Origin: Setoptus koraiensis
Taxonomy: Eukaryota > Animalia > Arthropoda
Direction of reading: 5' to 3'
NCBI GenBank assembly: GCA_048013815.1
Contig: CM106586.1
Location: 22,568,001 to 22,632,000 of the forward strand
DNA length: 64,000 nt
The notes beneath the pieces are model-generated. The model was not told where the DNA came from. It searched no databases and saw only the letters and a program-made list of their open reading frames with translations. Positions 47,645-62,324 of the stretch are shown in pieces (position 1 is the first letter of the stretch; each line of letters starts with the position of its first letter). The translations under genes were made by a program, and so were the position numbers.

Positions 47645-50600
47645 TTAGCTTTTTGTGTAAGCTGGCGATGACATATCAGAGCTAGCGCTTCCGTAAGATT
47701 GGCTGTCCATTTTCATTTGTTGTTGAGCCATCATTGACTTTCTGTTGTTGTTGAGCATTTTAATCATAGACAGGGCCATTTTGTTGTTTCCTGCAGCACC
47801 GTAAGCACCTGCAGCATTTGGTGACATCATCATCATACTGTTACCTCCGTATTGTTGACCGCTAGTCTTGCCAGCACCTGCCATCATACCAGAGTCCATT
47901 GGGCTTTGTCCGTAGGCGGACGACGAGTCACTTCCGGCCATCATTTTTTGATGAACTGGTATCTGTTGGTATTGGCGTAATTTAGCCATTGATCGCTGGG
48001 CACCAGCCATGCCGTTCATGCCGTTGGCAGCACCGTATTTGGCAGCGGCCGTCATTCCCATGTTAGCACCAGCCTGAGAGGCTCCGTATTTGTTGTTGTT
48101 GTTGTTCATTTCAGCTGATTGTCCGTAGTTTGACTGTCCGGCGGATTTTGTTGCTGAGGCGCCAGCCATCGAGTAGCCACCGTTAGCAGCAGCCATCATG
48201 TTGTTGGAACCGTATGAGTTCGATGCCGAGCCACCATATCCGGCAGCCTTACCAGACTGTAATGGGGTCTCAAATCCTGACATCATAAATTGTTGTGGCA
48301 TTTGTTCACCATAGGCACCGGCACCTGTCATGGCGCTGTCACTTTCGGCGCCGTAACCGGATGCTCTGTTTGCATCGGCTGATCCAGAAGCTGAACCGTA
48401 ACCTTGATCCATGGCTGCCATCATGTTGGCGGCCGAGTTGTCGTCGTAAGATGAGGCACCAGAGTCTTGTTGTTGCTGTTGTTGGTCCATTTGCGAGTTG
48501 TATGTTGGCGCATCGCTGTCTGTGTCCATCAAGGCAGCAGTGGCACCGTAGCTTCCCATTGAGCTCATCATTTTGTTGTTGTTTTGCATCTCGTAACCAG
48601 CCTGTGATTGTTGTTGTTGTGCACGTTGAGCACCACCATAGTTAAGTGCTGCCTTCTTTTGCGAATTGACCATCATGTTCACCAACGCTTGACCGCTCAT
48701 TTTAGCAGCGGCCGAGCCACCGTAGGCACCCGAACCAGAGGCACCGGCACCGTTCATTGCTGATTTCATCATCATGGCGGCAGTTGCACCGTAGTTACCT
48801 GCCGAGGAGCCTGCTCCTCCCATGCTGCCGGCACCGTACGATGATTTCATTTGACTAGCTGCACCCATTGAGCTGGCACCGTTAGAACCGTATGAACCCG
48901 AGGATCGTCCGTTACCGTTGCCAGCGCCATTGTAAGCCGATTGCATCATTGCTGGTTGCTCAGATTGTCCGCTTCCGTACGAGGAAGAGGCGTCTGACGA
49001 TGATGATGAGTAAGATGATGATGACTTAGTTGCGTAAGATCCCTCAGGTGGTGTCTCAACAATGTATTGCACATCAGCTGGGTTCTCGGTGGAGCCAACA
49101 CCGGGCTCGTTGGTCTTGACAATGGCATTGAAACCCGAAGCGCCGGCCGTGTATTCGACCTGGCGTGTTGTGAGCGCGCGAATATTTCGTGGGATGGAAC
49201 GAATCGATAGATTAGTTGTGTAGTAGTTGTGTAGCGAACAGGTCGCTGTTGTCTAGCAATAACTCGTATAACTCAGGTCGCGTCAGCGCAACGAGTTATG
49301 AGAAACTGATTGTGAGCTTCCATCTATGTCCCGCATTGGGCAACTTTCTTCCTGATTTAGTCGCCGGCTTACCTGTCTGTAGATTCCCGCTGGGTCTTTG
49401 TAGCCGTAGCTGCCTTTCACTTCGCCGCGGGCATCGCCGACTTCATGGCGATCCTGGGTCGTTCCATAGCCGTCGTCGCTCTCGAAACCGAACATGTAAG
49501 GCATGGGCTTCTCCTATGCAAATGAGTTGGTTGAGTCGATAGTTATACCGGTTATTGTTGTTATGTTGAGCAACAACAGCAGCAGCAGCAGGTTGTTGGC
49601 GATGAGCAGAGTGATTTATGGTAAGACAACAATAGATTCAGATGGAGACATTAGATTTGATTAAGTTGTTGATTGTGCAAAGCGCTAATCGGAGCGCACC
49701 GTGACAAGCACAACTGATCCGATCATGACATAATCTTGTCGTCTTGTTAGCCCGCATGGCGAATCGATTGTCTGGCCCTCACAACCGGACAATCAACTGG
49801 CTTGTCCGTCACTGATCATCGGTCGCAATTCACGACCGATGACCGGTGGCCGATAACGAGCTACGTAACGATGAATATTCATCGCCTCCTACGCAATTCA
49901 ATTGCAACAGTGCGCGAATAACCGTCAATATTAGCCGCTTAGATCAGCCGTGAGCACTATCCGTTTGTGAATGATCCCATATTCATGAATGGGATATTCA
50001 TGGATATGAGATCATCCGGATCCGCATGAATCCATGAATGTCGGCTGGCCACGAAAGCGGCCGCGAATCTTCACGGCTCTATATTCATGAATATGTTCAT
50101 AAATATATCCATGAGTATATTCATGAGTATATTCATGAATATATTCATGGATACGCTGGTGGTTGCATAATGACGACAAACGCGAAATGCCGCGCCATGA
50201 CGAAAATCAGTGCCGCCGGGGTACCTACCTGTTCGCCGTAACCCTGTTTTCCGTAGCCGGACTTGGCAGCGGCACCGTAGGCGCCGTTGGCGGCCTGTTG
50301 CTTGGCGCCATATTGGTTGGCCATTTGGTTGTCGTTGCCCTGTTGGCCGTATTGTGATTGTGCACCGGCCATCATTTGTGGGGCGCTTGAGGAATCGTAG
50401 CCATTGGATTGTTGTTGGTTGTTGCCATAGTTACCCATCTGAGAGCCCATCGAGCTAGGCACTGGGGCCATCTTTTTCTGTGAATATGGCGACGACTGGT
50501 ATTGGGCCATGGCGAGGTGCGAGGCCAGGCACACGGCGGCCAAGCAGGTAGCGGCCTGTCATTTGGGCGAGTTGTTTGTGTTTGGGATTGATGAGCGAGC

Positions 50601-50754
50601 ATAGCGAGAATATACGATGAGGAACGGAGTTGAGAATTAGTGACTTGTCGATATATGATAATATGATAATAATACTATGACTAGACCGTTAGGTGTTGCG
50701 TTGCACACAGTTGCTGGCAACTATGGGGAAACTCACAATTGATATCACTTTCAT
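47645..50754 (-). CDS. Cuticular protein with chitin-binding Rebers-Riddiford domain and long G/A/S/M/Q/N/Y-rich tail, four exons (50754-50737, 50555-50229, 49513-49373, 49159-47645), ~666 aa
   Basis: Splicing at canonical phase-0 GT-AG sites gives the signal peptide MKVISI|AATCLAAVCLASHLAMA and the R&R core PYMFGFESDD...GEVKGSYGYKDPAGIYRQ|VEYTAGASGFNAIVKTNEPGVG, a form typical of chelicerate cuticle proteins. Confidence 0.92.
50081..50152. repeat. 12-bp self-complementary tandem array (ATATTCATGA[A/G]T) x6 in cuticle gene intron 2
   Basis: Units start at 50081, 50093 (degenerate), 50105, 50117, 50129 and 50141. Confidence 0.9.
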
Positions 50755-50947
50755 TGTGTGTGTGGTTTGTGGTGCTTGAATTCGCTACTAATGAGTGAGC
50801 AATTCTTCTATGCAATATTTCTACTGTGATGAGATTGAATGTTGCAGAAGATTTTTAAAAAATTTCTAAGACTGATTGATCTATCGTATTGATCTTGCGT
50901 GAGCGGGTGATTGAAACTCAGTTGAACTGTTGTGTTGCTTCTCACTC

Positions 50948-50984
50948 AATGATGACCAAACCAGCCAACTGGCCGCCTTATATA
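50948..50984 (-). promoter_or_regulatory. TATA box plus initiator core promoter of the cuticular protein gene
   Basis: Minus-strand TATATAAG at 50984-50977 and an Inr-like TCATT at 50952-50948, about 30 nt downstream and ~200 nt upstream of ATG 50754. Confidence 0.65.
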
Positions 50985-51510
50985 GCGACCCGCGAGCCTC
51001 AGCCGATACTTTAATATGTGTGCCGATAATGAGCACGGGCCGGCCCGTGGGGGACAGCAGCGGCAGCAGCAGCCAGTTGAGCGATTATAGCGCTACACAG
51101 ACAGAGCGGGGTTCATCTTTGTTTGCTAGCAAGGCGCTCAGCAAGGTCTCACCTTTGCTCTCCATTCACGGGGCTTCGCAGTCACAACACACACACACAC
51201 ACAGTCACAGTTGTGAGCTGAACAATATGCTCGTCTAACCGTTAATTTCAAGGTAGTTGGCAGCGAGGAGGCAACGACAGTCGCCGCTGTGACGCTCGCA
51301 CACAGCGGACGCGGGGCAAGCGAGCAAGCGGGCGACTTATCCAAGCGACACAACAGGTGAGTTTGACAGCTACGACAGAGCGTTATGCGCAAATCGGGGG
51401 GCTTGGCCACTGCGCACACGTGGATATTGGCGCTCGCCGCCGACTGACTGCGAATGATACACAAAAGAGCGATCGCTCGGCCGCTTGCGTCACTTGCACC
51501 TGTCGCACGT

Positions 51511-51606
51511 TACCTGAGTTACCTGTGCTGGCCGCGTTACCTGTGCTGGCCGCGTTACCTGTGCTAGCCGCGTTACCTGAGTTACCTGTGTTACCTGAGT
51601 TACCTG
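51511..51606. repeat. 9/18-bp array carrying eight TTACCTG (CAGGTAA) cores
   Basis: TACCTG at 51511, 51520, 51538, 51556, 51574, 51583, 51592 and 51601. Confidence 0.95.
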
Positions 51607-51948
51607 TGCGCGCTGGTTGTGCGCCGTTGTGCGCGGTTGTGCGCCGTTGTGGCCGGTGCAAGTGCGCGCGTTGCCCGCTGGGGGCTGGCCGTCTTGCCAG
51701 CGACAGTCAGCTGTCAGGCCGGTTGCTATCTGTGGCTCGCTATTGATTTAAAGCATGTCGGCGTGCGTGTGTGTGTGTGTGCCGACTAATTAAGCCCGAC
51801 GAACGAGCGGCTGAGCTGGATCATTTGTCAACAGTCGCGCACCACCGACACTGTTGCTGTCGAGCAAGCCGAGAGCCGGCCCAAAATTGACGGACTTTGT
51901 TCATTGTCACTTGCAGCCATAAACTCTTTATCGCCATCATCATTTGCC

Positions 51949-52008
51949 AAATCGTTTGCCAAATCGTTTGGCGAATCGTTTGGCGAATCGTTTGCCAAAT
52001 CGTTTGCC
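51949..52008. repeat. 12-bp tandem array ([A/G]AATCGTTTG[C/G]C) x5
   Basis: Direct reading. Confidence 0.95.
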
Positions 52009-52718
52009 AAATCGCTGGGCTCGAGACGCTTGCCCGTCTATTCATTGCAGTGTTGGTTGCAGTTCGCTAATGAATTATGCCAAAACGCAACAGTAACGGC
52101 AATCAACAAATAAACAACAGGTAAATCGGCGGCTCGCTAATGCCCGCTCGCTCGGATGTTGCAAGCGACGTATGCGATCGCGGGGATCGCAAGCTGTGCC
52201 CGGCTCGCCGTGCCGCATTCATGCCCATGTTCTTTGGTATGTTCGTTGGTATGTTCGTTGGTATATTCATCGGTACATTCGTTCGCGCACTTGTTCGTAC
52301 GAACAACCAGTGTTCGCGTATTCACGAATTCACGAATGAATATGCTTCAATTAACTGCTGCGATGGCTGCCGCAACTGGTGGTCGCAAGCCGGCAACCGG
52401 CGACCGATGCCGGCCGAGCCACCCGAGCAGCCCAGTCCCGAGAGCGACCCGAGCGGGGCAATCGCGACAGCAACAAGCGCAGCGCAATCCCGAGAGCGAG
52501 ACAGTAAACTAGACAAATCAAAAAATTGATTGCCAGTGCCCCCGAACGGCGCTAATTGTGCGCGGTTGTTGCGCGGGCCGCATCCCGGGAACCGCTGCCA
52601 CACTCTGGCAGCCAGAGACACGCTGCACTGTTAGCGACGACTCTGCAGTAATTAGCGGCCGCCGACTTGTTCTGCCGACGCTCTATTTATCGTTGCGATT
52701 TACCGTTGATCTGTCTTA

Positions 52719-52758
52719 GCGTCTCGGCGTCTCGGCGTCTCGGCGTCTCGGCGTCTCG
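52719..52758. repeat. 8-bp tandem array (GCGTCTCG) x5
   Basis: Direct reading. Confidence 0.95.
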
Positions 52759-53270
52759 GCGTTTTACCGTTTCGGCGTTGTGCCGCTACCTCACCAAACG
52801 AGCTGCGAGTGACTTACCGGCAGCGAGCTGCCACGAACCCGCACCGATCGGCAGCCGCTCGCCCTTCCCATGGCTTCTCCGAGACGAGCCAGCAGCGCGA
52901 ACAGGGGAGCGCCTTGCCGGAGAGCGTTGCCAGAGTGTGACGCGGTGCCAGCGGCGGGCCGGCCAGCCCGAACTGACCGCCGCCGGCCGGCTCGCCCGTG
53001 CAACCGCCCGACAAGCCTCACTCAGCTTCAGCTGATCGGGCCGGCCGGCCGTTCATGAAATGATTTGCAATGAGGCCCGGCGAGCGGTGTGCGTGTGTGT
53101 GTGTGTAGCCTAGTAGTAGTGTGTCTAGCCGTAGTAGTGGTGGCACGGACTGACGGCGCGACGCTGTGATAAATAATTGGTCGCAATGATAAACGCGGCG
53201 CTTGTGTGAGTGACACTGTCAGCGCGGGCTGTCGTCGCTGTCATTAGCGCGAATTGTTGTTGTTGTTGTT

Positions 53271-53308
53271 GTTGTTGGTATTGTGCAAATTTGCACAATA
53301 CCAACAAC
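53271..53308. repeat. Perfect 38-bp palindrome with no spacer
   Basis: GTTGTTGGTATTGTGCAAA|TTTGCACAATACCAACAAC. Confidence 0.97.
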
Positions 53309-55490
53309 CGACAGCGACAACAACAACGACAACGACAGATATTATTGATGGCAACTGTCAAACATTCAGACTTACAAGTCAGACATTTAGTCAGAGTTGC
53401 GCTGAACTGGCTCAAGTCGCGCGTTTGTCCAGCGCGCAACCAGTGGGCACGGCTGTGGGCAAGGTCGCGCTCTGGATGATTATTATTATTGATTAAATCA
53501 ATAACTTGATGGCCGTCAGCGTGCGCTCGATTATCAACGGCCGGCCAACAGGAGGCTGACGCAATGATTGCCGGCCGCTCTCTTACCAGCAACTAAGAGT
53601 AATTAAGGCTGCCTAATATCCAATGCCCAATCGCACTGGCGCTCTCTCGCTCTCTCGCTCGCCAGTTCACCTGTTACCAGCGGCGGCGGCGGCTCACCTG
53701 TTGCCGACAACAGGTGAGCCGCTGGAAAATTGTCAGCTGATCTGGCCGTTGTCGCATTGCATGTCTGGCCTGTCTTGGCATGTCTTGGCGTGTCGCTATC
53801 GCTCGGCGCGAACAGAATCGGTAACTGGAGCGGCGCGTACCCGAGCCAGCGCGACGCCCGCAACGGGATGAGACGGGCCGAGATGAACTCTGGTGGGCAA
53901 GCGGCGCAATACGTCGCGCGTAACATATGAGTTGTATGGGGACGCCAAGCGGCGCTCGTGTCAAGGTTTCGGGTGTGATCAATGAGCTGTCGGTGGTCGC
54001 GTAGCCGTAGTTGCCGCTGTCGTTGTCGTTGTTGTTGCTGTCGTTGTTGTTGTTGCTGCTGCAGTTGTCGCTGTTGCTGTTGTCGCTGTTGCTGTTGTTG
54101 CGCTATTATCAATTTCGTTGTTTAGTTATAGTGAGTCGGTTGTTCAGTTGCGCTCGCTCGGTGTGGCCTGTTGGCCGCGGCCTGAGCCCCCGCAACAATC
54201 CAGCCAGCGCTGTCCACACGCAGCTCACATCTACAACCGCCAGGTGAGCCGCAACAGCCGACAGGTGAGCCGACCAGGTGAGCCGGCTGAGCCGTGCTAG
54301 GCCTGGCGAGCCGACTGGTGAGTCAAACCGATGAATGACGGCCATAAGTAACATTAATGACAACTGCATATGCTAAATGAGTGATCGATGGAACGGCAAA
54401 CGCAACGGCGGCGCCAGCCTGGCCAACGTTGCAGATAAATAGAGAGAAGGATAAGGAGAAATGACGAGAAATAAAGAGAAATAACGAGAAATAACGACTT
54501 GTGGAAAGTGGAAAATGGAAAATGAATTCGCAATGAATAAAAGGCCAGCCGGCCAGCCTTCGCCGCGCTCTTCGCCGGCCCGACCACTCGTCCGCTCGTG
54601 TCGCTTGAGTGTGCGGGCCGGCGCTCAGTCGCCCGTCTGTCGAACATGCCAACCAGACACAACCAGACACAACAACTGCGTACAACAACCAGATGCAATA
54701 GGCAAGGTGGCGGGCTGTCTCGGGAATCCGGCGCGGGGCTGGCCTCTGATTCGTGGCCAGCCAGACAGCCTCGAATGGGCGCACAGCCGGCCCCTTGCCG
54801 GCTTGCGGCGGCCCGAGGAGAGTCGCGCCCGCTTTTTGGTAGACCGCAGCGGCCGCAGCGCCCGACTAAATAGCGGGCGCCGGGAGGGCCGGGCCGTGCG
54901 GCCGGGCGGCGAAAATTGAAATTGGCTTGCTGGCCAACTGTCATTGTTGGCGTGTGTGTGCGCGCAAGATTGTTATTATTTCAAATATGCAAAGTAGTTG
55001 CGTCGAAGCGACCAATCTAATATCTCGTCACTGGCCGGCCGCCAGTGTCTGGACAGCGCCGACTGGATCGGATTGCGGCGACAGTCGGTCGGCGGCCATT
55101 TGTTGGCAACGACAATTATTGGCCACAAGCGAACAAGCGATTGCCCGGCCAGCGATTGCTTGGTCGCCGGGCCGGCGCAGTCTCTCATCACTTGTTATGT
55201 AAGCGATTGAATATTTGCTCGCTCGTCAAGCTGTCGTCGTGTTACGTCATTATCGCGCTCGCCATAATGACGCTCGATAAACATTCCAATTTGGGCCGCG
55301 CGCTTGAATTTACATTTAGATTCAATGTTATCATCGGCCGTCGGTCGGCCGCTGTCCGACCGGCACACTCGGCCGACAACAGCGCCGACCAGCAGCGCCG
55401 GTTGTCGGCACGCTGACGCACCAAACAAATATCGCACTTGATTGCGCAACAATGCCAAACAAATGTCTTGCCAGCGAACGAAAATCTGAG

Positions 55491-55535
55491 AAATTTGCCA
55501 AATCTGCCAAATTTGCCAAATTGGCCAAATTTGCC
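55491..55535. repeat. 9-bp tandem array (AAAT[T/C][T/G]GCC) x5
   Basis: Direct reading. Confidence 0.93.
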
Positions 55536-56446
55536 CTGTGCTGACCACTGCGCGGGCCGTGCAGTGGGTGCCGTCGAGCGCCGCGTTGTTTGCATTGCGT
55601 TCTCGTCTTGGCGGCACAACGATCGCGATTGGCGCCAGTTTGCGCAGGTGAACGCGATCGCATAAACGGAGCCCTAAACGGACGAGATACGAAATGCAAA
55701 GTGCAAAAAACGATCATCGAGCCGCCGATCAAACCGATCGATCGCTCGCCTGCCTAATCGTCGACAGCGGCGACGGGCGCCCGAGCGGATCGTCCCGTCG
55801 ATTGAGCGCTGCACAAAATTGGATCGTCCGGCCGACGCGGCGCGCAAACGAACCCGAGCCACATGCGAGCGGGACGCGCCCAGCCGTCGCGACTCGCGAT
55901 GACCTGAATCACCTGTATTATACAGGCCGCATAATTATTGTTGTTGCTGTTGTCGCTGTTGTTGGGTAATCCGAGCCGCGGCTCACCTGTGCGCACGTGA
56001 GGTCACACGCGGCCAACAGTCGCGCCGCCGTGCGCAATCGACAGCGGGCGCCCTCGCTCTCGGGCACTCTATTGCTGGCGCCTGGCGAGTAATTAAACAA
56101 ACAACTCGATCGACCGATCATTCAATTTCAAGGCAGCACCCAAACGGCGCCGGCTTCGGGTTGCAGTCGGGCGAGCGCGCGCAATTGCGCGCTAATCACA
56201 ATTAAATCGCAGCGACTTTATGCTCTAGACATTTTATCACTTTATCATCTCATAATTTTATATCTCGCTCTTATTTTATCTGCGTAATCGGCTCGCCTGG
56301 CGGCGCTGTGCCGCACTGCAAACGAAACGGCCATAATAATGAAAATCGGGCGCCCATTGCGACCCGTCAGCCGGCGACGGCTCGCCCGCCAGACCCGTCG
56401 GGCTCGCTCGAAACGCCCAGCGCGAAATGCAAGAATGCGAACATAC

Positions 56447-56558
56447 GAAAATCCGAAAATACGAAAATCCGAAAATACGAAAATGCGAAAATGCGAAAAT
56501 ACGAAAATGCAAAAATACGAAAATGCGAAAATACGAAAATCCGAAAATGCAAAAATGC
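56447..56558. repeat. 8-bp tandem array ([G/A]AAAAT[A/C/G]C) x14
   Basis: Fourteen in-register units from 56447. Confidence 0.95.
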
Positions 56559-59500
56559 GAACGAGAGAGCGGCGCCAATTAGACAGTCCCTGCTGGCAAC
56601 TCCAAACAACTGGGCAGCGCAAACGCCGGCGATTGTCAGCTTAATTACGGGCAGAGGTGCTCAAATTGACGATAATGACCAGCGCCGGCCCGCGCCTACC
56701 GGGCAGCGTCTGACGGCCCGCGTCTGCGGGCCGGCGTCCGCGGGCCGGCGTCTAAATCGGGCCGTGCTCACGGCCGGCCAATTTGCAGTTATTTCGGTTA
56801 TATTTGTTTATGCAGATTCAATTATGATGTGCGCGCTGGCTGGGCGAAGCCGCCCGCCTGTCTCGTCCAATAACGTGCGGTTGCGTTAAGCGGCTTGATT
56901 GATGCCCATCATGTCGACGCTAATGAGTTGCAGCTCGAACGAGGCGCGACTTGACAGCGACAAAAAGACAACAAGGCAACAAGACGACACGACAAGCCGA
57001 TAGCGAGACATTGATGGCAAGACGCGCGCGCCAGCGAGGATGCGCTCGCTGCCGTGACGGCCATATAGAGGAGCCCGCAATTAGTATGCAATGCTAATTA
57101 ATTAGCGGCCAACGAGCGCACCATCCCGAGCCGAGCCGAGCCGAGCCGAGCTAGCAGCCGTTGTTTGGCCGTGCTAACAAGTGTAAGTAAGAGCGAAATA
57201 ATGGTGCGTATTAACAGGGATATGAATAGTGTTTTGAGCCAATGGGCCAGCCATATTGAGCCAGGCGAGCGGGTGGCCCAAACAAAGCCGGCTCGTTGTA
57301 CAATATTCTCGCTCGTTGTGTCTCGCCGAATATTGTTAGCCATTCGAGCCGGCTAACAATATGGTAAAAAGAGCGAGAAATTCTGTAAATTTTGAATTTG
57401 AATTGCTCAAAAGTGATCCAGTGATCATAATACAAATTAAATTCGCAAACACACATTCAATTCGAGCCAGCCGCCGACAGGCTCACCTGTCTCGCCGACA
57501 CACACACACACACACAAAACAATAATTCTCATGGTCAAGCACACGCAATCATCCCTTTAAATCAACAGCAACAGCACCAACAACAACAGCAACAGCAACG
57601 ACGACAGCGACAACAACAGCCGAGACCGCAACAACCACGACGCTACAGCACGTACAACAGATCGCCTGTTGCTGTTGTTGGTGCTGTTGTTGTTGTTGTT
57701 GCTGTTGTTGTTGCTGTTGTTGTTGCTGTTGTTGTTGTTGTTGTTGTTGGTGGCGCTGTCGTTGGTGGTGCTGTCGTTGTTGGCGCTGTCGTTGTTGGTG
57801 TCGCTGTTGTGCAATCGGTGCGCGTCAATGGGACTCACTGCTGAGAGATGCAAGATCAACACGGCCATTACCAGATACTCAAACGGTTTGATCGCGCACT
57901 CGCATTGCTGCAAGTGAAGCTAAATTTGATTTATTATGATTATGACTGCTCGTGTGGCTGATGTTGTTGCCGCCAAACGCCAACGAGCCAACAACCGCCA
58001 GCAACCACCAGCGAGCCAACAACCACCAACAACCACCGCCACCAACAACAACAACCCACAACCAGCAACAACCAGCAACAACCAACAACAACCACCGACA
58101 ACAACAGCCAGCGGCTTATCGACAAAGCCGCTGCCACAACAAAGGGTAAAAGGTAACTGGCGCCGATGGAAAACAAATAGCGCGCTCATTAGATATTCTG
58201 GCGCCTAGATGGAAATGGACCGATTGAGTAGCAGCTTGCCAGCCAACAAATGACCTCGGCGGCCAATGATAACAAATCGAAGCGGGCCAATTGGACAACA
58301 ATCAACGGCAACACTAATCAGAGACTAATGACGCCCAGCTGATCTAGATCTTCTTCCTCTTGTTCAATAATTGTGAGAGATTATTGAAATGGCTATAATT
58401 ATACACTTACCTGAGCTTGCAGCTCTGCACTCGGGTGTGCTGTCGTGGTTAGTTGTTAGTGTTGCTCCTATTAGTGTGTTATTATCAAATTAGTAGTTGT
58501 GCCTAAATCAATAGCCACTCACAAGTTGTGAACCACCGACAGTCGGTGGGATCGGACAGGTAGGTGATAACTGTCTGGCGTTATTGTGATAGCACACGCT
58601 AAAAACTAACAAGACTAACAACACTAAAAAGAGCTCTCTAACAACACTAAAAAGTGTATTTATATACCGAGTGCCTTTTGCCTTTTGCAGTCGACTGGCG
58701 GACAGGTGAACGGCAGCCATTGTTTGCCGTTGAGCGAATAAATCAAATTGAATCGAATCGGATCGACTCGAGGCGAGGCGAGTCGCGTCCAATCGGGCGA
58801 AATCAAATCAAATGCAGGAAAAATAAACAACAACAACGACGACCGTTCATATCTATACATAACCGAGCCCTAACAAGTTGAGACACTCGACTGGCTGCAA
58901 TGGCCGCCTATGGCATGCATGATATATACTCGATATAGCTGGCTGGCAGGTTGGTGGCCAGCACAGGTGATTGATTTTTGTTAACCCGTTGCCATAACCA
59001 GCAACCAACATGTAAACGCACTCATGTGAATAATGAAGATGGCCAAAAACAATAGGCGAAAAGCCAATGACAGATGATAATGACCATAACTACTCGTCAG
59101 ACGATCATCTTTCTGTCGGTCGTTGTCGCTGTTGTCGCTGTCGCTGTTGTCGCTGTTGTTGTTGTCTCTGTAGCTGTTGTTGTTGCTGCTGTTGCCGTTG
59201 ATAGCCATCTAGACAATTGTAGACAATTATCCCGGCTTGTTACGGGCAGCAACAGTTATTTGCGCCGGCTGCCGACCGCAATTTGCCAGCCAGCTAGCCA
59301 GCCAGCCAGCCAGCCAAACTGGAAACTGCACACTGCACACTGGTGGTCATTTCGGGAATCGCCTTGGTGGCCACCGAGCGACACAAACACAAAGTCACAA
59401 GCTTGCCGACGAACGCATCGCACAAACTGCAACAGATAAATAGTAACAGATATAAATAAATACAGGCGTATAAATGACAGCAGGTATAACACGTTGCTGG

Positions 59501-59570
59501 TCGATGATCGTCAATGATCGGCGATGATTGTCGATGATCGGCGATGATTGTCGATGATCGGCGATGATCG
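59501..59570. repeat. 10-bp tandem array ([T/G]CGATGAT[C/T]G) x7
   Basis: Direct reading; partly alternating 20-bp higher-order structure. Confidence 0.93.
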
Positions 59571-60626
59571 CCGACTCGACAAATCACACACGAGCTGTTG
59601 CGTAATGCATGCAAACTGCATCATCAACGGCTGGCTGTATCATCGCGTCGAGCCTGACAGTGGCCATCGATTTATTGCATCTGATCGTTTTAATCGTCAC
59701 AGTGTAGTCATTGGGTTATTGTGTGATCATCGCACCAAGCTGATGCAACAATTGTTAGTGCTGTCAATGTCGGCGACGTCATCTCTTTTATATTCATGTA
59801 ATGCATGCCAATTATTTGTCGTGTCGCCATCACTTTTGGCTATATCTATTCGCAGTTGGCTACTAACTTATTTATAAGGCTTTATAAGTATGTGGTTTCC
59901 CATGATTGTTGACAGACAGCGCGAAAAGATTGCATCGGCCCACAACAGCCAACAACAGGTAACAACAGGTAACAACAACGGGTGACGCAACTAGTCACAA
60001 GTTTGTGTGCGTGTATATGTATTAATTATTCAATTAGTTGCCGGTAAACAGGTGAAATATGGTGCTAGGGCCAGCAGCGGCAGTGATGATGGCACGTATA
60101 TCAAAGTTGCAGTTTGTTGGCGATTGTCGCGCAATCGGTCTAATTATTCCGACAAATGCTTCATAGTCATATTGGCATAACACAATAGATGGATCTATAT
60201 CTCTGAACTCTTATTTATTGACGCCGCTCCTCGGTTGTTATCGACACTCGACAATGGCCCATTTCAGAAGTCAGATCAGCATCTAATAACAGCAGCAGCA
60301 GCAGTTGAAGTAGTGTTTTAGTGGGACATAAATAAATAAATTACCATTGTCATTATCGCCGATCTGCTGCCGGTACCAATATTTAATGTATATCAAACTG
60401 AGCTGGTAGCCTAGTCAACTGACCATATATCACCGCCCGGTATATCGTTGTGAATAATCACAGATTGATACTCGATTGATCTGTCCAAAACGAAAAAAGT
60501 GTCCTAAAAGTGTCACAGCTCTCACTACAAATAACCACATTCGCATATACAGCAATCTATTGGTCTCAGCGACAGTTCCGGCGGTTTGTCTTAGCAACTT
60601 GTTGAGAAACTTGAACAGCAACTTAA

Positions 60627-62324
60627 ATGAACGCAAACATGATGATGATGATTAAAACCTCCAAACTACTGGCATGCCTCATACTAATGGCACTGAGCGT
60701 GTCGGTGCTGTCGTCGGTCCACTGTCAACAGACACCCGCGCCCAATGCCGACACCCAGATACCGAGCCCGCTGGGTGTTTGGGATAGGGCCCTCAACGGT
60801 TTCGGCCGGCTCACCAGTTTCGGTCAATCGGCCAGAGGACAGGTGGATCGAGTTGTGCAGGAGGCCTTCAAGATATTTGCCAGACTGTACCACAAGAACT
60901 ATACAGAGGAGGAGATACCAAAAAGAATGAAACTGTTCAGCGAAAACAAAAAACTCGTCGACGAATCGCTGCTCGACTACAAGCAAGGCAAATCGTCCTA
61001 CGCCTTGCGCGTCAATCAATTCACCGACTGGGTAAGCCTCGTGGATTATCCAACAATAACCATTATCTTTATTCCATCTAAATGGAATGAACCGGACCCG
61101 TTATTCAATTTTGTCTCAATCATGTCTGTCTTGTTGTATAATATGCATATATTGTGATGATTAATATGTGATAATTAGGACGACCAAGAGTTGCATAGTC
61201 TCACGGGCACAGACCCCACTGGAGAGGTGGATCTGGCACAAATGGTGAGAGGCGCTGGCGATAGTGACTCATCGAGCTATTTGGGGGCCAGACAATCTGA
61301 GAGCATTCCCGTCTCAAAGGATTGGAGAAAAAGCGGTTGCGTAAGTGCACCAATTAACCAGAAAGATTGCGGGGCCTGTTACGCAATAGCCACCATGAGC
61401 GTTGTTGAATCTATGCGATGCATTCAGGGCAACTCGTCGCCCATATTGAGTCCACAACATATAGTGGATTGTGCTAGCTCGCGACAAGGTGAGTTGAACA
61501 GCTAATTTGTTTGTCATTTTTTATTTAATTGCGCAATCATTGTCACCGTTTATTGTTACCATTGTGTTTACTCAATCACGACGCAGGCTATCAAAATTAT
61601 GGTTGTAACGGTGGCTGGCCCACCAGAGTGCTCAAGTATCTCCAGGACTACAACATAGCCGTCAGAGATACGTGCTATCCGTTTGTTCACAAGGTAAATA
61701 TTTGATTGATGATGGCGGTGATTGCAACCGAGCCAATCACTCTTTTTTGATAAATTAAGACAAATTAGACACACACACACTGACATCTTGCGTCTTTGCC
61801 CACCCATAATTAGCAAGGAATGTGCAAAGTCCAACAAATGAAACAACAGTCCGGCTGTGTAGTGAAAGCCAGCCCTACGGATAGGCGTCAGTTGACCTAC
61901 AGGATACTGAACAACGAAAGAGACATTTTGTATCATGTGGCCAAAACGGGGCCAGTGGTCACCGTCATGAAAGCGACTAGAAAATTCACCATGTACTGGT
62001 AAGTGATTTTCACACAATGCTCACTCTAATAATAAATAATATTATTGTATATTATTAACAATGTATATTCCAATCACAATGATCGATGTAATGTATCGGG
62101 CGCATAGGACGGGCATATTTGATGATTCATCTTGCTCAAATAGACGCAGTGACGTAGATCATGCCATCGTCATTGTTGGCTACGGAAAAGAAAACGGAGT
62201 CGACTATTGGCTCATCAAAAACTCTTGGGGAACCACCGATTGGGGCGAAGGTGGCTACGCTAAATACAGGCGAGGCAAGTATGCCTGCTCTATCGGCCAC
62301 TGGGGTTGGGTAGTCACAAGCTAA
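60627..62324 (+). CDS. Secreted papain-family (C1A, cathepsin L-like) cysteine protease with I29 prodomain, five exons (60627-61031, 61179-61488, 61587-61693, 61814-61998, 62108-62324), ~407 aa
   Basis: Signal peptide, ERFNIN-like prodomain (EIPKRMKLFSEN) and NQFTDW. Catalytic NQKDCGACY, GCNGGWP, VDHAIVIVGYG and YWLIKNSWG. The four GT-AG introns have phases 0, 1, 0 and 2 and sum to an intact frame (1224 nt). Confidence 0.93.

Follow-up and report, generated by a model that had tools for sequence, protein, structure and literature searches.

The DNA considered here is a non-coding stretch of about 9 kb (51000-60100) inside a 64-kb window, the whole piece that was analysed (G000:C2:22568001-22632000, in a 48.76-Mb genome of two contigs). 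The heptamer CAGGTGA is over-represented in this stretch on both strands, and we consider, with about even confidence, that its copies may be E2-box-type sites gathered in a homotypic cluster within an upstream regulatory domain shared by two genes. A gene for an RR-type cuticle protein lies on the left and a cathepsin-L gene on the right; because the two are divergently transcribed, the 9.5 kb between them is upstream of both. In the proposed mechanism the stretch would act as the shared cis-regulatory domain of this divergent pair, and its central part (53.6-57.5 kb) carries the word, with the consensus (A)CAGGTGA(G/A)(CC), in both orientations, some copies having been multiplied by local micro-duplication and inverted duplication. 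We infer binding, factor and target gene alike: the most likely function would be the repeated docking of one CAGGTG-reading transcription factor, which would most plausibly repress the cuticle gene and/or cathepsin L or restrict their expression.

Enrichment and specificity of CAGGTGA

An exact recount of the stretch gave 15 copies of CAGGTG/CACCTG, 14 of them extended to CAGGTGA, and 14 copies of CAGGTA/TACCTG, 12 of them reading CAGGTAA. The 26 CAGGTRA sites, 12 on the plus and 14 on the minus strand, are interleaved, and the remaining 55 kb of the window hold 13. The 10-mer CAGGTGAGCC is present in seven copies. These numbers, and the positions behind them, reproduce exactly those of an initial annotation of this DNA, and the both-strand homotypic excess of an E-box-like word in non-coding DNA, which that annotation had proposed, is supported. 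The extended form CAGGTGAG is read by eight of the 14 CAGGTGA sites, seven of which also read CAGGTGAGCC. The longer form ACAGGTGAGCC(GC) is found, between unrelated flanks, at four scattered places (53691, 54241-54275, 55980 and 57480); it is the sole complex word among the recurring 10-13-mers of the stretch, the others being CAA/CAG/CGA-type quasi-microsatellites or pure G+C words. The sites and the repeats that contain them are listed below (a caret marks the exon-intron border of a splice donor; nt, nucleotides).

51351-51364, plus strand: E-box site CAACAGGTGAGTTT, which also fits the genome's real donor type CAG^GTGAGTTT
51509-51608, minus strand: tandem array with a 9/18-nt unit, GTTACCTG(N), holding eight of the 12 CAGGTAA sites, all of them CAGGTAAC and poor donors
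53667-53720, no strand assigned: three sites in 54 nt, namely TCACCTG at 53667 and a hairpin-type palindrome
53691-53720, no strand assigned: the palindrome GGCTCACCTGTTG-CCGA-CAACAGGTGAGCC with 13-nt arms, one of only nine such inverted 10-mer pairs in the genome
54241-54284, plus strand: micro-tandem array of three CAGGTGAGCC copies, spaced 21 and 13 nt, among the 30 direct close pairs found genome-wide
55645-55651, plus strand: CAGGTGA (GCGCAGGTGAACG)
55909-55989, minus strand: TCACCTG at 55909 and GCGGCTCACCTGT at 55978-55990 (minus-strand reading ACAGGTGAGCCGC)
57480-57490, minus strand: GGCTCACCTGT, minus-strand reading ACAGGTGAGCC
58407-58413, minus strand: TTACCTG, minus-strand GCTCAG^GTAAGTG, a perfect donor consensus and the sole CAGGTAA site with G at +5
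58557, plus strand: CAGGTAG
58703-60055, plus strand: three weaker CAGGTGA(A/T) sites at 58703, 58964 and 60049
59956/59966, plus strand: 10-nt duplication, CAGGTAACAA twice, giving two of the CAGGTAA copies

Under a third-order Markov model of the region, 1.5 copies of CAGGTGA are expected in 9.1 kb, so that the 14 observed represent an approximately nine-fold excess; microsatellite and single-array words aside, CAGGTGA and its overlapping relatives are the top words of the region by this measure. The genome was sampled by twenty 10-kb pieces taken 1.2 Mb apart along contig 1 (200 kb, unbiased), and those tiles whose guanine plus cytosine (GC) content was at least 0.47, 61 kb in all, served as GC-rich background. 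CAGGTGA occurs there 28 times, or 4.6 times per 10 kb, compared with 15.4 per 10 kb in the region, which is 3.3 times as dense. The GC-matched expectation for 9.1 kb is 4.2 copies, and the Poisson probability of the observed 14 is P=1e-4, or P=1e-3 to 4e-3 when the three tandem copies (54241/54262/54275) and the two palindromic ones (53694/53711) each count as one event. CAGGTGAGCC is a stronger outlier than the heptamer: the region holds seven copies, whereas the genome averages 0.12 per 9.1 kb and contig 1, over its first 7.2 Mb, never exceeds three in a span of this length.

The excess of CAGGTGA is real, while the CAGGTAA half of the CAGGTRA count is a repeat artefact. The latter number is inflated because ten of the 12 CAGGTAA copies are tandem or duplication copies, eight in the array at 51509-51608 and two in the 59956/59966 duplication; approximately four independent events remain, compared with about one expected. 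No enrichment of CAGGTAA was seen in GC-rich DNA elsewhere (seven copies in the 61-kb sample), and these sites stand outside the CAGGTGA signal. The picture of a domain saturated with CAGGTRA, drawn in the initial annotation, holds for CAGGTGA but not for CAGGTAA, and the figure of about two expected copies given there, although correct under uniform base frequency, was derived from the wrong background. A signal peculiar to the locus, to which that annotation had opposed equal frequency in other GC-rich DNA, is not supported: the excess is genome-wide, yet the region lies about three-fold above the average of its compartment.

In the GC-rich part of the 200-kb sample CAGGTGA ranks second in over-representation among heptamers that are not microsatellites, whereas all of its one-base variants have between 1 and 15 copies each. 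Changes at position 1 leave 5 (AAGGTGA), 5 (GAGGTGA) and 4 (TAGGTGA) copies; at position 6, CAGGTAA has the 7 copies already mentioned, CAGGTCA 2 and CAGGTTA 4; and at position 7, CAGGTGC has 8, CAGGTGG 3 and CAGGTGT 3. Genome-wide counts of 10-mers were made as the sum of forward and reverse occurrences, with the reversed word as control:

CAGGTGAGCC: 664 copies, control 49
AAGGTGAGCC: 126 copies, control 43
CAGGTAAGCC: 82 copies, control 60
CAGGTGAGTT, a donor-type 10-mer: 512 copies, control 124, a four-fold excess

The enriched word requires the full CAGGTG core followed by A, because one-base variants and the 10-mers AAGGTGAGCC and CAGGTAAGCC are far rarer. It was found in 17 of the 20 random 10-kb samples, and about 47 of its 51 copies in the unbiased sample have unrelated flanks and lie outside arrays.

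CAGGTGA shares the GC-rich compartment with other words. The top non-microsatellite words of the GC-rich sample are TTACGTA(A), CAGGTGA, TTATGTAA/TTACATAA, CCGGAAGT and GGGGCCCC, and the TTACGTA(A), CAGGTGA and TTATGTAA/TTACATAA groups we take to be PAR-bZIP-, E-box- and ETS-type sites; TTACGTAA, TTATGTAA and CCGGAAGT are transcription-factor-like words enriched in this compartment. Their distribution among domains is heterogeneous (chi-square 100, 15 degrees of freedom, P=1e-14). Samples L001 and L014 contain many bZIP-type words (TTACGTAA/TTATGTAA) plus GGGGCCCC, sample L007 contains eight ETS-type words (CCGGAAGT), sample L009 contains ten CAGGTGA, and the region studied here contains fourteen CAGGTGA and zero copies of TTACGTAA, CCGGAAGT and GGGGCCCC; CAGGTGA is almost absent from L007, L013 and L014, GC-rich as they are. 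Arrays of other short words were also seen (ATGTTCAT x12 in L006, TCCCGAAA x11 in L004 and TTACGTAA x3 in L001). Each GC-rich domain has its own word signature.

Candidate readers of the word

Among named factors a ZEB/Zfh1-type zinc-finger protein would fit best, because A, not C or T, follows CAGGTG and because the flanked form CAGGTGAG is the listed Zeb1 consensus (PMC11211573). The locus resembles ZEB/Zfh1 E2-box targets in the CAGGTG/CACCTG core, in the CAGGTGAG extension and in the presence of several close pairs; it differs from them in that the CAGGTA form, which ZEB accepts, is not co-enriched at the locus or genome-wide and in that the local word is longer (…GAGCCGC). ZEB/Zfh1-type factors are reported to be able to use closely paired sites (Remacle et al. 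1999). The alternatives would be Snail/Scratch, a basic helix-loop-helix dimer of the E-protein type or another zinc-finger factor.

An A 5' of the core is typical of the Snail superfamily. At the locus, ACAGGTG is read at 12 of the 15 sites, compared with 22 of 42 in GC-rich DNA elsewhere, and the three copies of CAACAGGTG, at 51351, 53695 (minus strand) and 53708, have a Scratch-like form. These three are the Snail/Scratch-type sites that the initial annotation had pointed out, and they are present where it placed them, but the C/T flank of the Drosophila Snail type follows the core at one of the 15 sites. The other 14 carry A where the Snail consensus, [AG][AT][AG]ACAGGTG[CT]AC, has C/T after CAGGTG (quoted in PMC551538), and CAGGTGC/T is not enriched genome-wide. 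A ZEB/Zfh1-like flank thus seems to fit better than a Snail-like (including Escargot- and Scratch-like) one. In the same study CAGGTGA is a conserved upstream word likened to a Snail site, and CACCTGC is the one likened to ZEB/Zfh-1 (PMC551538). A cluster of Zelda TAGteam sites was rejected: TAGteam (CAGGTAG) shares CAGGTA with the local word, but position 6 of the enriched word is G instead of A, and there is one CAGGTAG only (58557).

As a whole, the locus is like homotypic enhancer clusters of arthropods in its many copies, their two orientations, their position in promoter-adjacent non-coding DNA, the origin of some of them in micro-duplication and the presence of other domains with other words. 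It is unlike them in being unusually rich in GC and CpG and extreme in its repeat and palindrome content. The element itself belongs to a known kind; what makes the cluster interesting is mainly the genome-wide, domain-specific saturation with words.

Several observations weigh against a cluster of transcription-factor sites or against its attribution. The word is favoured across the genome, often inside tandem arrays and palindromes, and a mutational or structural cause may lie behind this. L009, one of about six GC-rich loci of the sample, is nearly as dense, with ten CAGGTGA, two of which are real splice donors. In a relative, L027, found via cathepsin exon 1 (69% amino-acid identity), the 807 nt upstream of cathepsin share promoter blocks with our locus but none of the three nearest CAGGTRA sites (59956-60049). 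L027 is the sole orthologous DNA that was compared and corresponds to a part outside the central cluster, and this difference may speak, weakly, against conservation, but only for the three sites that are most proximal and weakest. The ZEB label in particular suffers from the failure of CAGGTA co-enrichment (CAGGTAA 7 vs CAGGTGA 28 in the GC-rich sample; CAGGTAAGCC 82 vs 60 genome-wide), and the pooling of CAGGTG and CAGGTA as a ZEB-specific argument, which the initial annotation had made, is not supported, the CAGGTAA sites being repeat copies.

Duplication, splicing and architectural alternatives

Close pairs of the word are common in this genome. Direct pairs of CAGGTGAGCC 1-30 nt apart number 30, compared with 0 for the control, and each has its own spacer; the spacers differ from pair to pair, and the pairs therefore represent independent local duplications. 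Inverted pairs of the type GGCTCACCTG…CAGGTGAGCC number nine, with 0 in the opposite arrangement and 0 in the control, and the six inspected (five other loci and 53691-53720) are all extended hairpin-type palindromes. Inverted pairs of the heptamer occur 132 and 89 times in the two arrangements, the controls giving 7 and 17; an orientation rule for inverted pairs was dropped, as the 9 vs 0 of the 10-mer shrinks to 132 vs 89 with the heptamer. The perfect 16-nt palindrome CAGGTGAGCTCACCTG has nine genomic copies (e.g., at C1:10433298 and C2:15940087), compared with about 0.01 expected. Transposon ends were rejected as the source of the 10-mer copies, whose flanks are unrelated past about 13 nt. 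A regime of duplication and palindrome formation acts on the word, but by itself it leaves unaccounted for a sharp single-base preference at mostly non-repeated places.

Taken as the whole explanation, such a regime would make the word a neutral by-product of micro-tandem and inverted duplication and short-patch copying, favoured by mutation or DNA structure and read by no protein. We regard this as rather unlikely. The direct and inverted pairs, absent or scarce among controls and with spacers all different, are in its favour, as are the unrelated short tandem arrays that fill the domain and the fact that three of the local 10-mer copies belong to one array and two to one palindrome. Slippage, however, does not explain the sharp preference of the heptamer at single positions, the large majority of sampled copies stand outside arrays between unrelated flanks, and the words enriched alongside are recognisable transcription-factor sites specific to particular domains; nor is the share of 10-mers found in close pairs (about 8%) above the share of arrays in these domains. 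A further candidate, which we find very improbable, is an architectural, insulator or recombination-directing zinc-finger protein that would mark GC-rich domains generally instead of acting as a gene-specific repressor. The genome-wide excess (664 vs 49 for the 10-mer), the occurrence in most random samples, the length of the recognisable word (11-13 nt) and its association with GC-rich, CpG-rich domains would agree with such a protein. The density of the word, however, varies strongly between GC-rich domains and falls near zero in L007, L013 and L014, boundary-like positioning was not seen, and, to our knowledge, the word is unlike arthropod insulator motifs.

Some or many of the sites could also be 5' splice or U1 sites of unannotated transcripts, for example of a divergent transcript beside the cuticle promoter with a first exon ending at 51356 (CAG^GTGAGTTTG), in which case much of the domain would belong to a non-coding RNA locus or to one long 5' intron; we hold this to be quite improbable. 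CAG^GTRAG is the donor consensus and CAG^GTGAG a good donor, and the real donors of the genome include CAG^GTGAGTTTG (two in L009), the cuticle gene's ATT^GTGAGTTTCC and GTAAGCC, seen twice in the window. The donor-type 10-mer CAGGTGAGTT is enriched as listed above, the sites at 51354 (plus strand, ACAACAG^GTGAGTTTG) and 58407 (minus strand, CAG^GTAAGT) are near-perfect, neighbouring 10-mers within 10 kb lie on the same strand in 22 of 30 cases, and long 5' introns are retained in eriophyoid genomes (PMC7738191). On the other hand, the local sites are interleaved on both strands within 9 kb, and G at +5, present in nine of the 26, is absent from 17, including all eight array copies (CAGGTAAC). 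The enriched word needs C at -3 and G at +3. The seven real donors of the window (GTAAGC, GTGAGT, GTAAAT, GTAAGT, GTAGGT, GTAAGC and GTGAGT) are different: five carry A at +3, and the base at -3 varies between C, A and T. The form repeated at the locus terminates in GAGCC instead of GAGTTT, and only the site at 51354 belongs to the CAG^GTGAGTT class; a codon-usage scan found no exon-like coding signal between the sites, and the same-strand bias drops to 16 of 23 (P=0.09) without pairs less than 1 kb apart. The preference of the initial annotation for a DNA-binding element over splice donors is upheld, the word's preferences for C1, G6 and A7 fitting a binding site better. The single site at 51351-51364, about 400 nt upstream of the cuticle gene start and on the opposite strand, may act as the donor for either a divergent transcript or a distal 5' exon.

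The domain, its flanking genes and its significance

The flanking genes and the features of the intervening domain are the following.

47645-50984, minus strand: RR-type cuticle-protein gene, left flank, with a TATA box at 50984-50977
50754, minus strand: ATG of cuticle exon 1, which encodes MKVISI; donor ATT^GTGAGTTTCC at 50736, acceptor at 50556
50229 and 49373, minus strand: ends of later cuticle exons, followed by a long Gly/Ala/Ser-rich last exon to 47645
50950-60600, no strand assigned: GC-rich, CpG-rich non-coding domain with many short tandem arrays, as shown by composition, repeats and absent coding signal
60108-60262, plus strand: promoter blocks TTGCA.TTTGTTG, AACTCTTATTTATTG and GACAATGGC, shared with L027:410-570
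60627-62324, plus strand: cathepsin-L gene, right flank, with five exons, ATG at 60627, an I29 propeptide and a papain domain

The GC content of the domain is 0.47-0.57, compared with about 0.40 in the remaining window, and CpG observed/expected is 1.25 (50600-60600), compared with 0.83 in the window's genes; the non-coding DNA at the locus is richer in G+C than the coding DNA. A hidden gene was rejected, in agreement with the initial annotation, which had recognised none in the stretch. Pfam gave zero matches for the ten longest open reading frames of the domain, and in a codon-usage scan of 50.6-60.6 kb in 300-nt windows, trained on thirteen window genes and giving 0.09-0.23 for the cullin and cuticle exons, none was gene-like; a CAACAA-repeat window at 57950 just reaches this range (0.096), yet it holds a stop codon. 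A search of the domain against Rfam returned no family at threshold, the sub-threshold matches being to microRNA families on CAACAA/GTTGTT hairpins. Long imperfect inverted repeats are found at 57563-57810 and 53254-53332, where CAACAA/CAGCAA runs face GTTGTT/GCTGTT runs. The tandem arrays, with 43 TRF rows in the domain, are short and mutually unrelated, as illustrated by those at 56434-56561, 51939-52014 and 59500-59574 (AATACGAA x16, ATCGTTTGCCAA x6 and GTCGATGATC x7.5). An 8-nt array unit is polymorphic between DNA samples, with an insertion at 56964 in sample X2.

The first exon of the cuticle gene, MKVISI, completes the signal peptide, and the first intron is 181 nt long; a TTG-started open reading frame at 50543 was rejected as the start of this gene. 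The cathepsin-L donors read GTAAGC, GTGAGT, GTAAAT and GTAAGT. The three blocks upstream of this gene are probably proximal promoter elements, judging by their conservation in L027. In L009 (5413-7782, minus strand) a multi-exon gene for a G-protein-coupled receptor, similar to biogenic-amine receptors, lies in a GC-rich domain, and its CAG^GTGAGTTTG donors are two of the ten CAGGTGA sites of that locus. Synteny was sought via Rieske homologues, and their contigs share only the Rieske gene and its MTPAP-like neighbour with the window, without the cathepsin or cuticle gene; the closest Rieske homologue (85% identity) lies on a 2.6-kb contig. A single search of sequencing runs yielded no RNA run. 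DNA samples X2 and X5 are near-identical, with six single-nucleotide polymorphisms and four indels in 6 kb, none of them in a site and too few for a test of constraint, and the reads of samples X7 and X8 match CAA/CAG microsatellites only.

The first 47 kb of the window are tightly packed with animal genes, single-exon for the most part, among them those for a KDEL receptor, polo kinase, a beta-TrCP-like WD40 protein, CLPTM1, an insulin-receptor-type kinase, a dystroglycan-like protein and a cullin. This compact, intron-poor organisation is like that of eriophyoid mites, whose genomes are among the smallest known from arthropods; spacers between genes have a median of about 0.5 kb there, and introns are lacking in more than 80% of genes (PMC7738191). 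The genome is streamlined, intron-poor and mite-like. Against such a spacer length, some 10 kb of gene-free DNA that have survived streamlining are a strong candidate for functional regulatory DNA.

Should the cluster prove to be a real binding array, it would offer a way to study how such an animal restricts a cuticle gene or a digestive protease, and the word signatures of domains would allow a cheap prediction of regulators across the genome. If, instead, the word was produced by the regime of duplication and palindrome formation, a mutational process with an unusual sequence bias would be indicated. A bolder proposal, improbable in our judgement, is that regulatory DNA in this genome may be laid out in GC-rich domains with micro-duplications, every one of them saturated with a word of its own (CAGGTGA, TTACGTAA or CCGGAAGT), and that a lineage-specific zinc-finger factor, marking or shaping an entire class of these domains, may have ACAGGTGAGCC(GC), often set in hairpin-type palindromes, as its site. 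If this were true, the regulatory code of a minute arthropod would be legible straight from its sequence.

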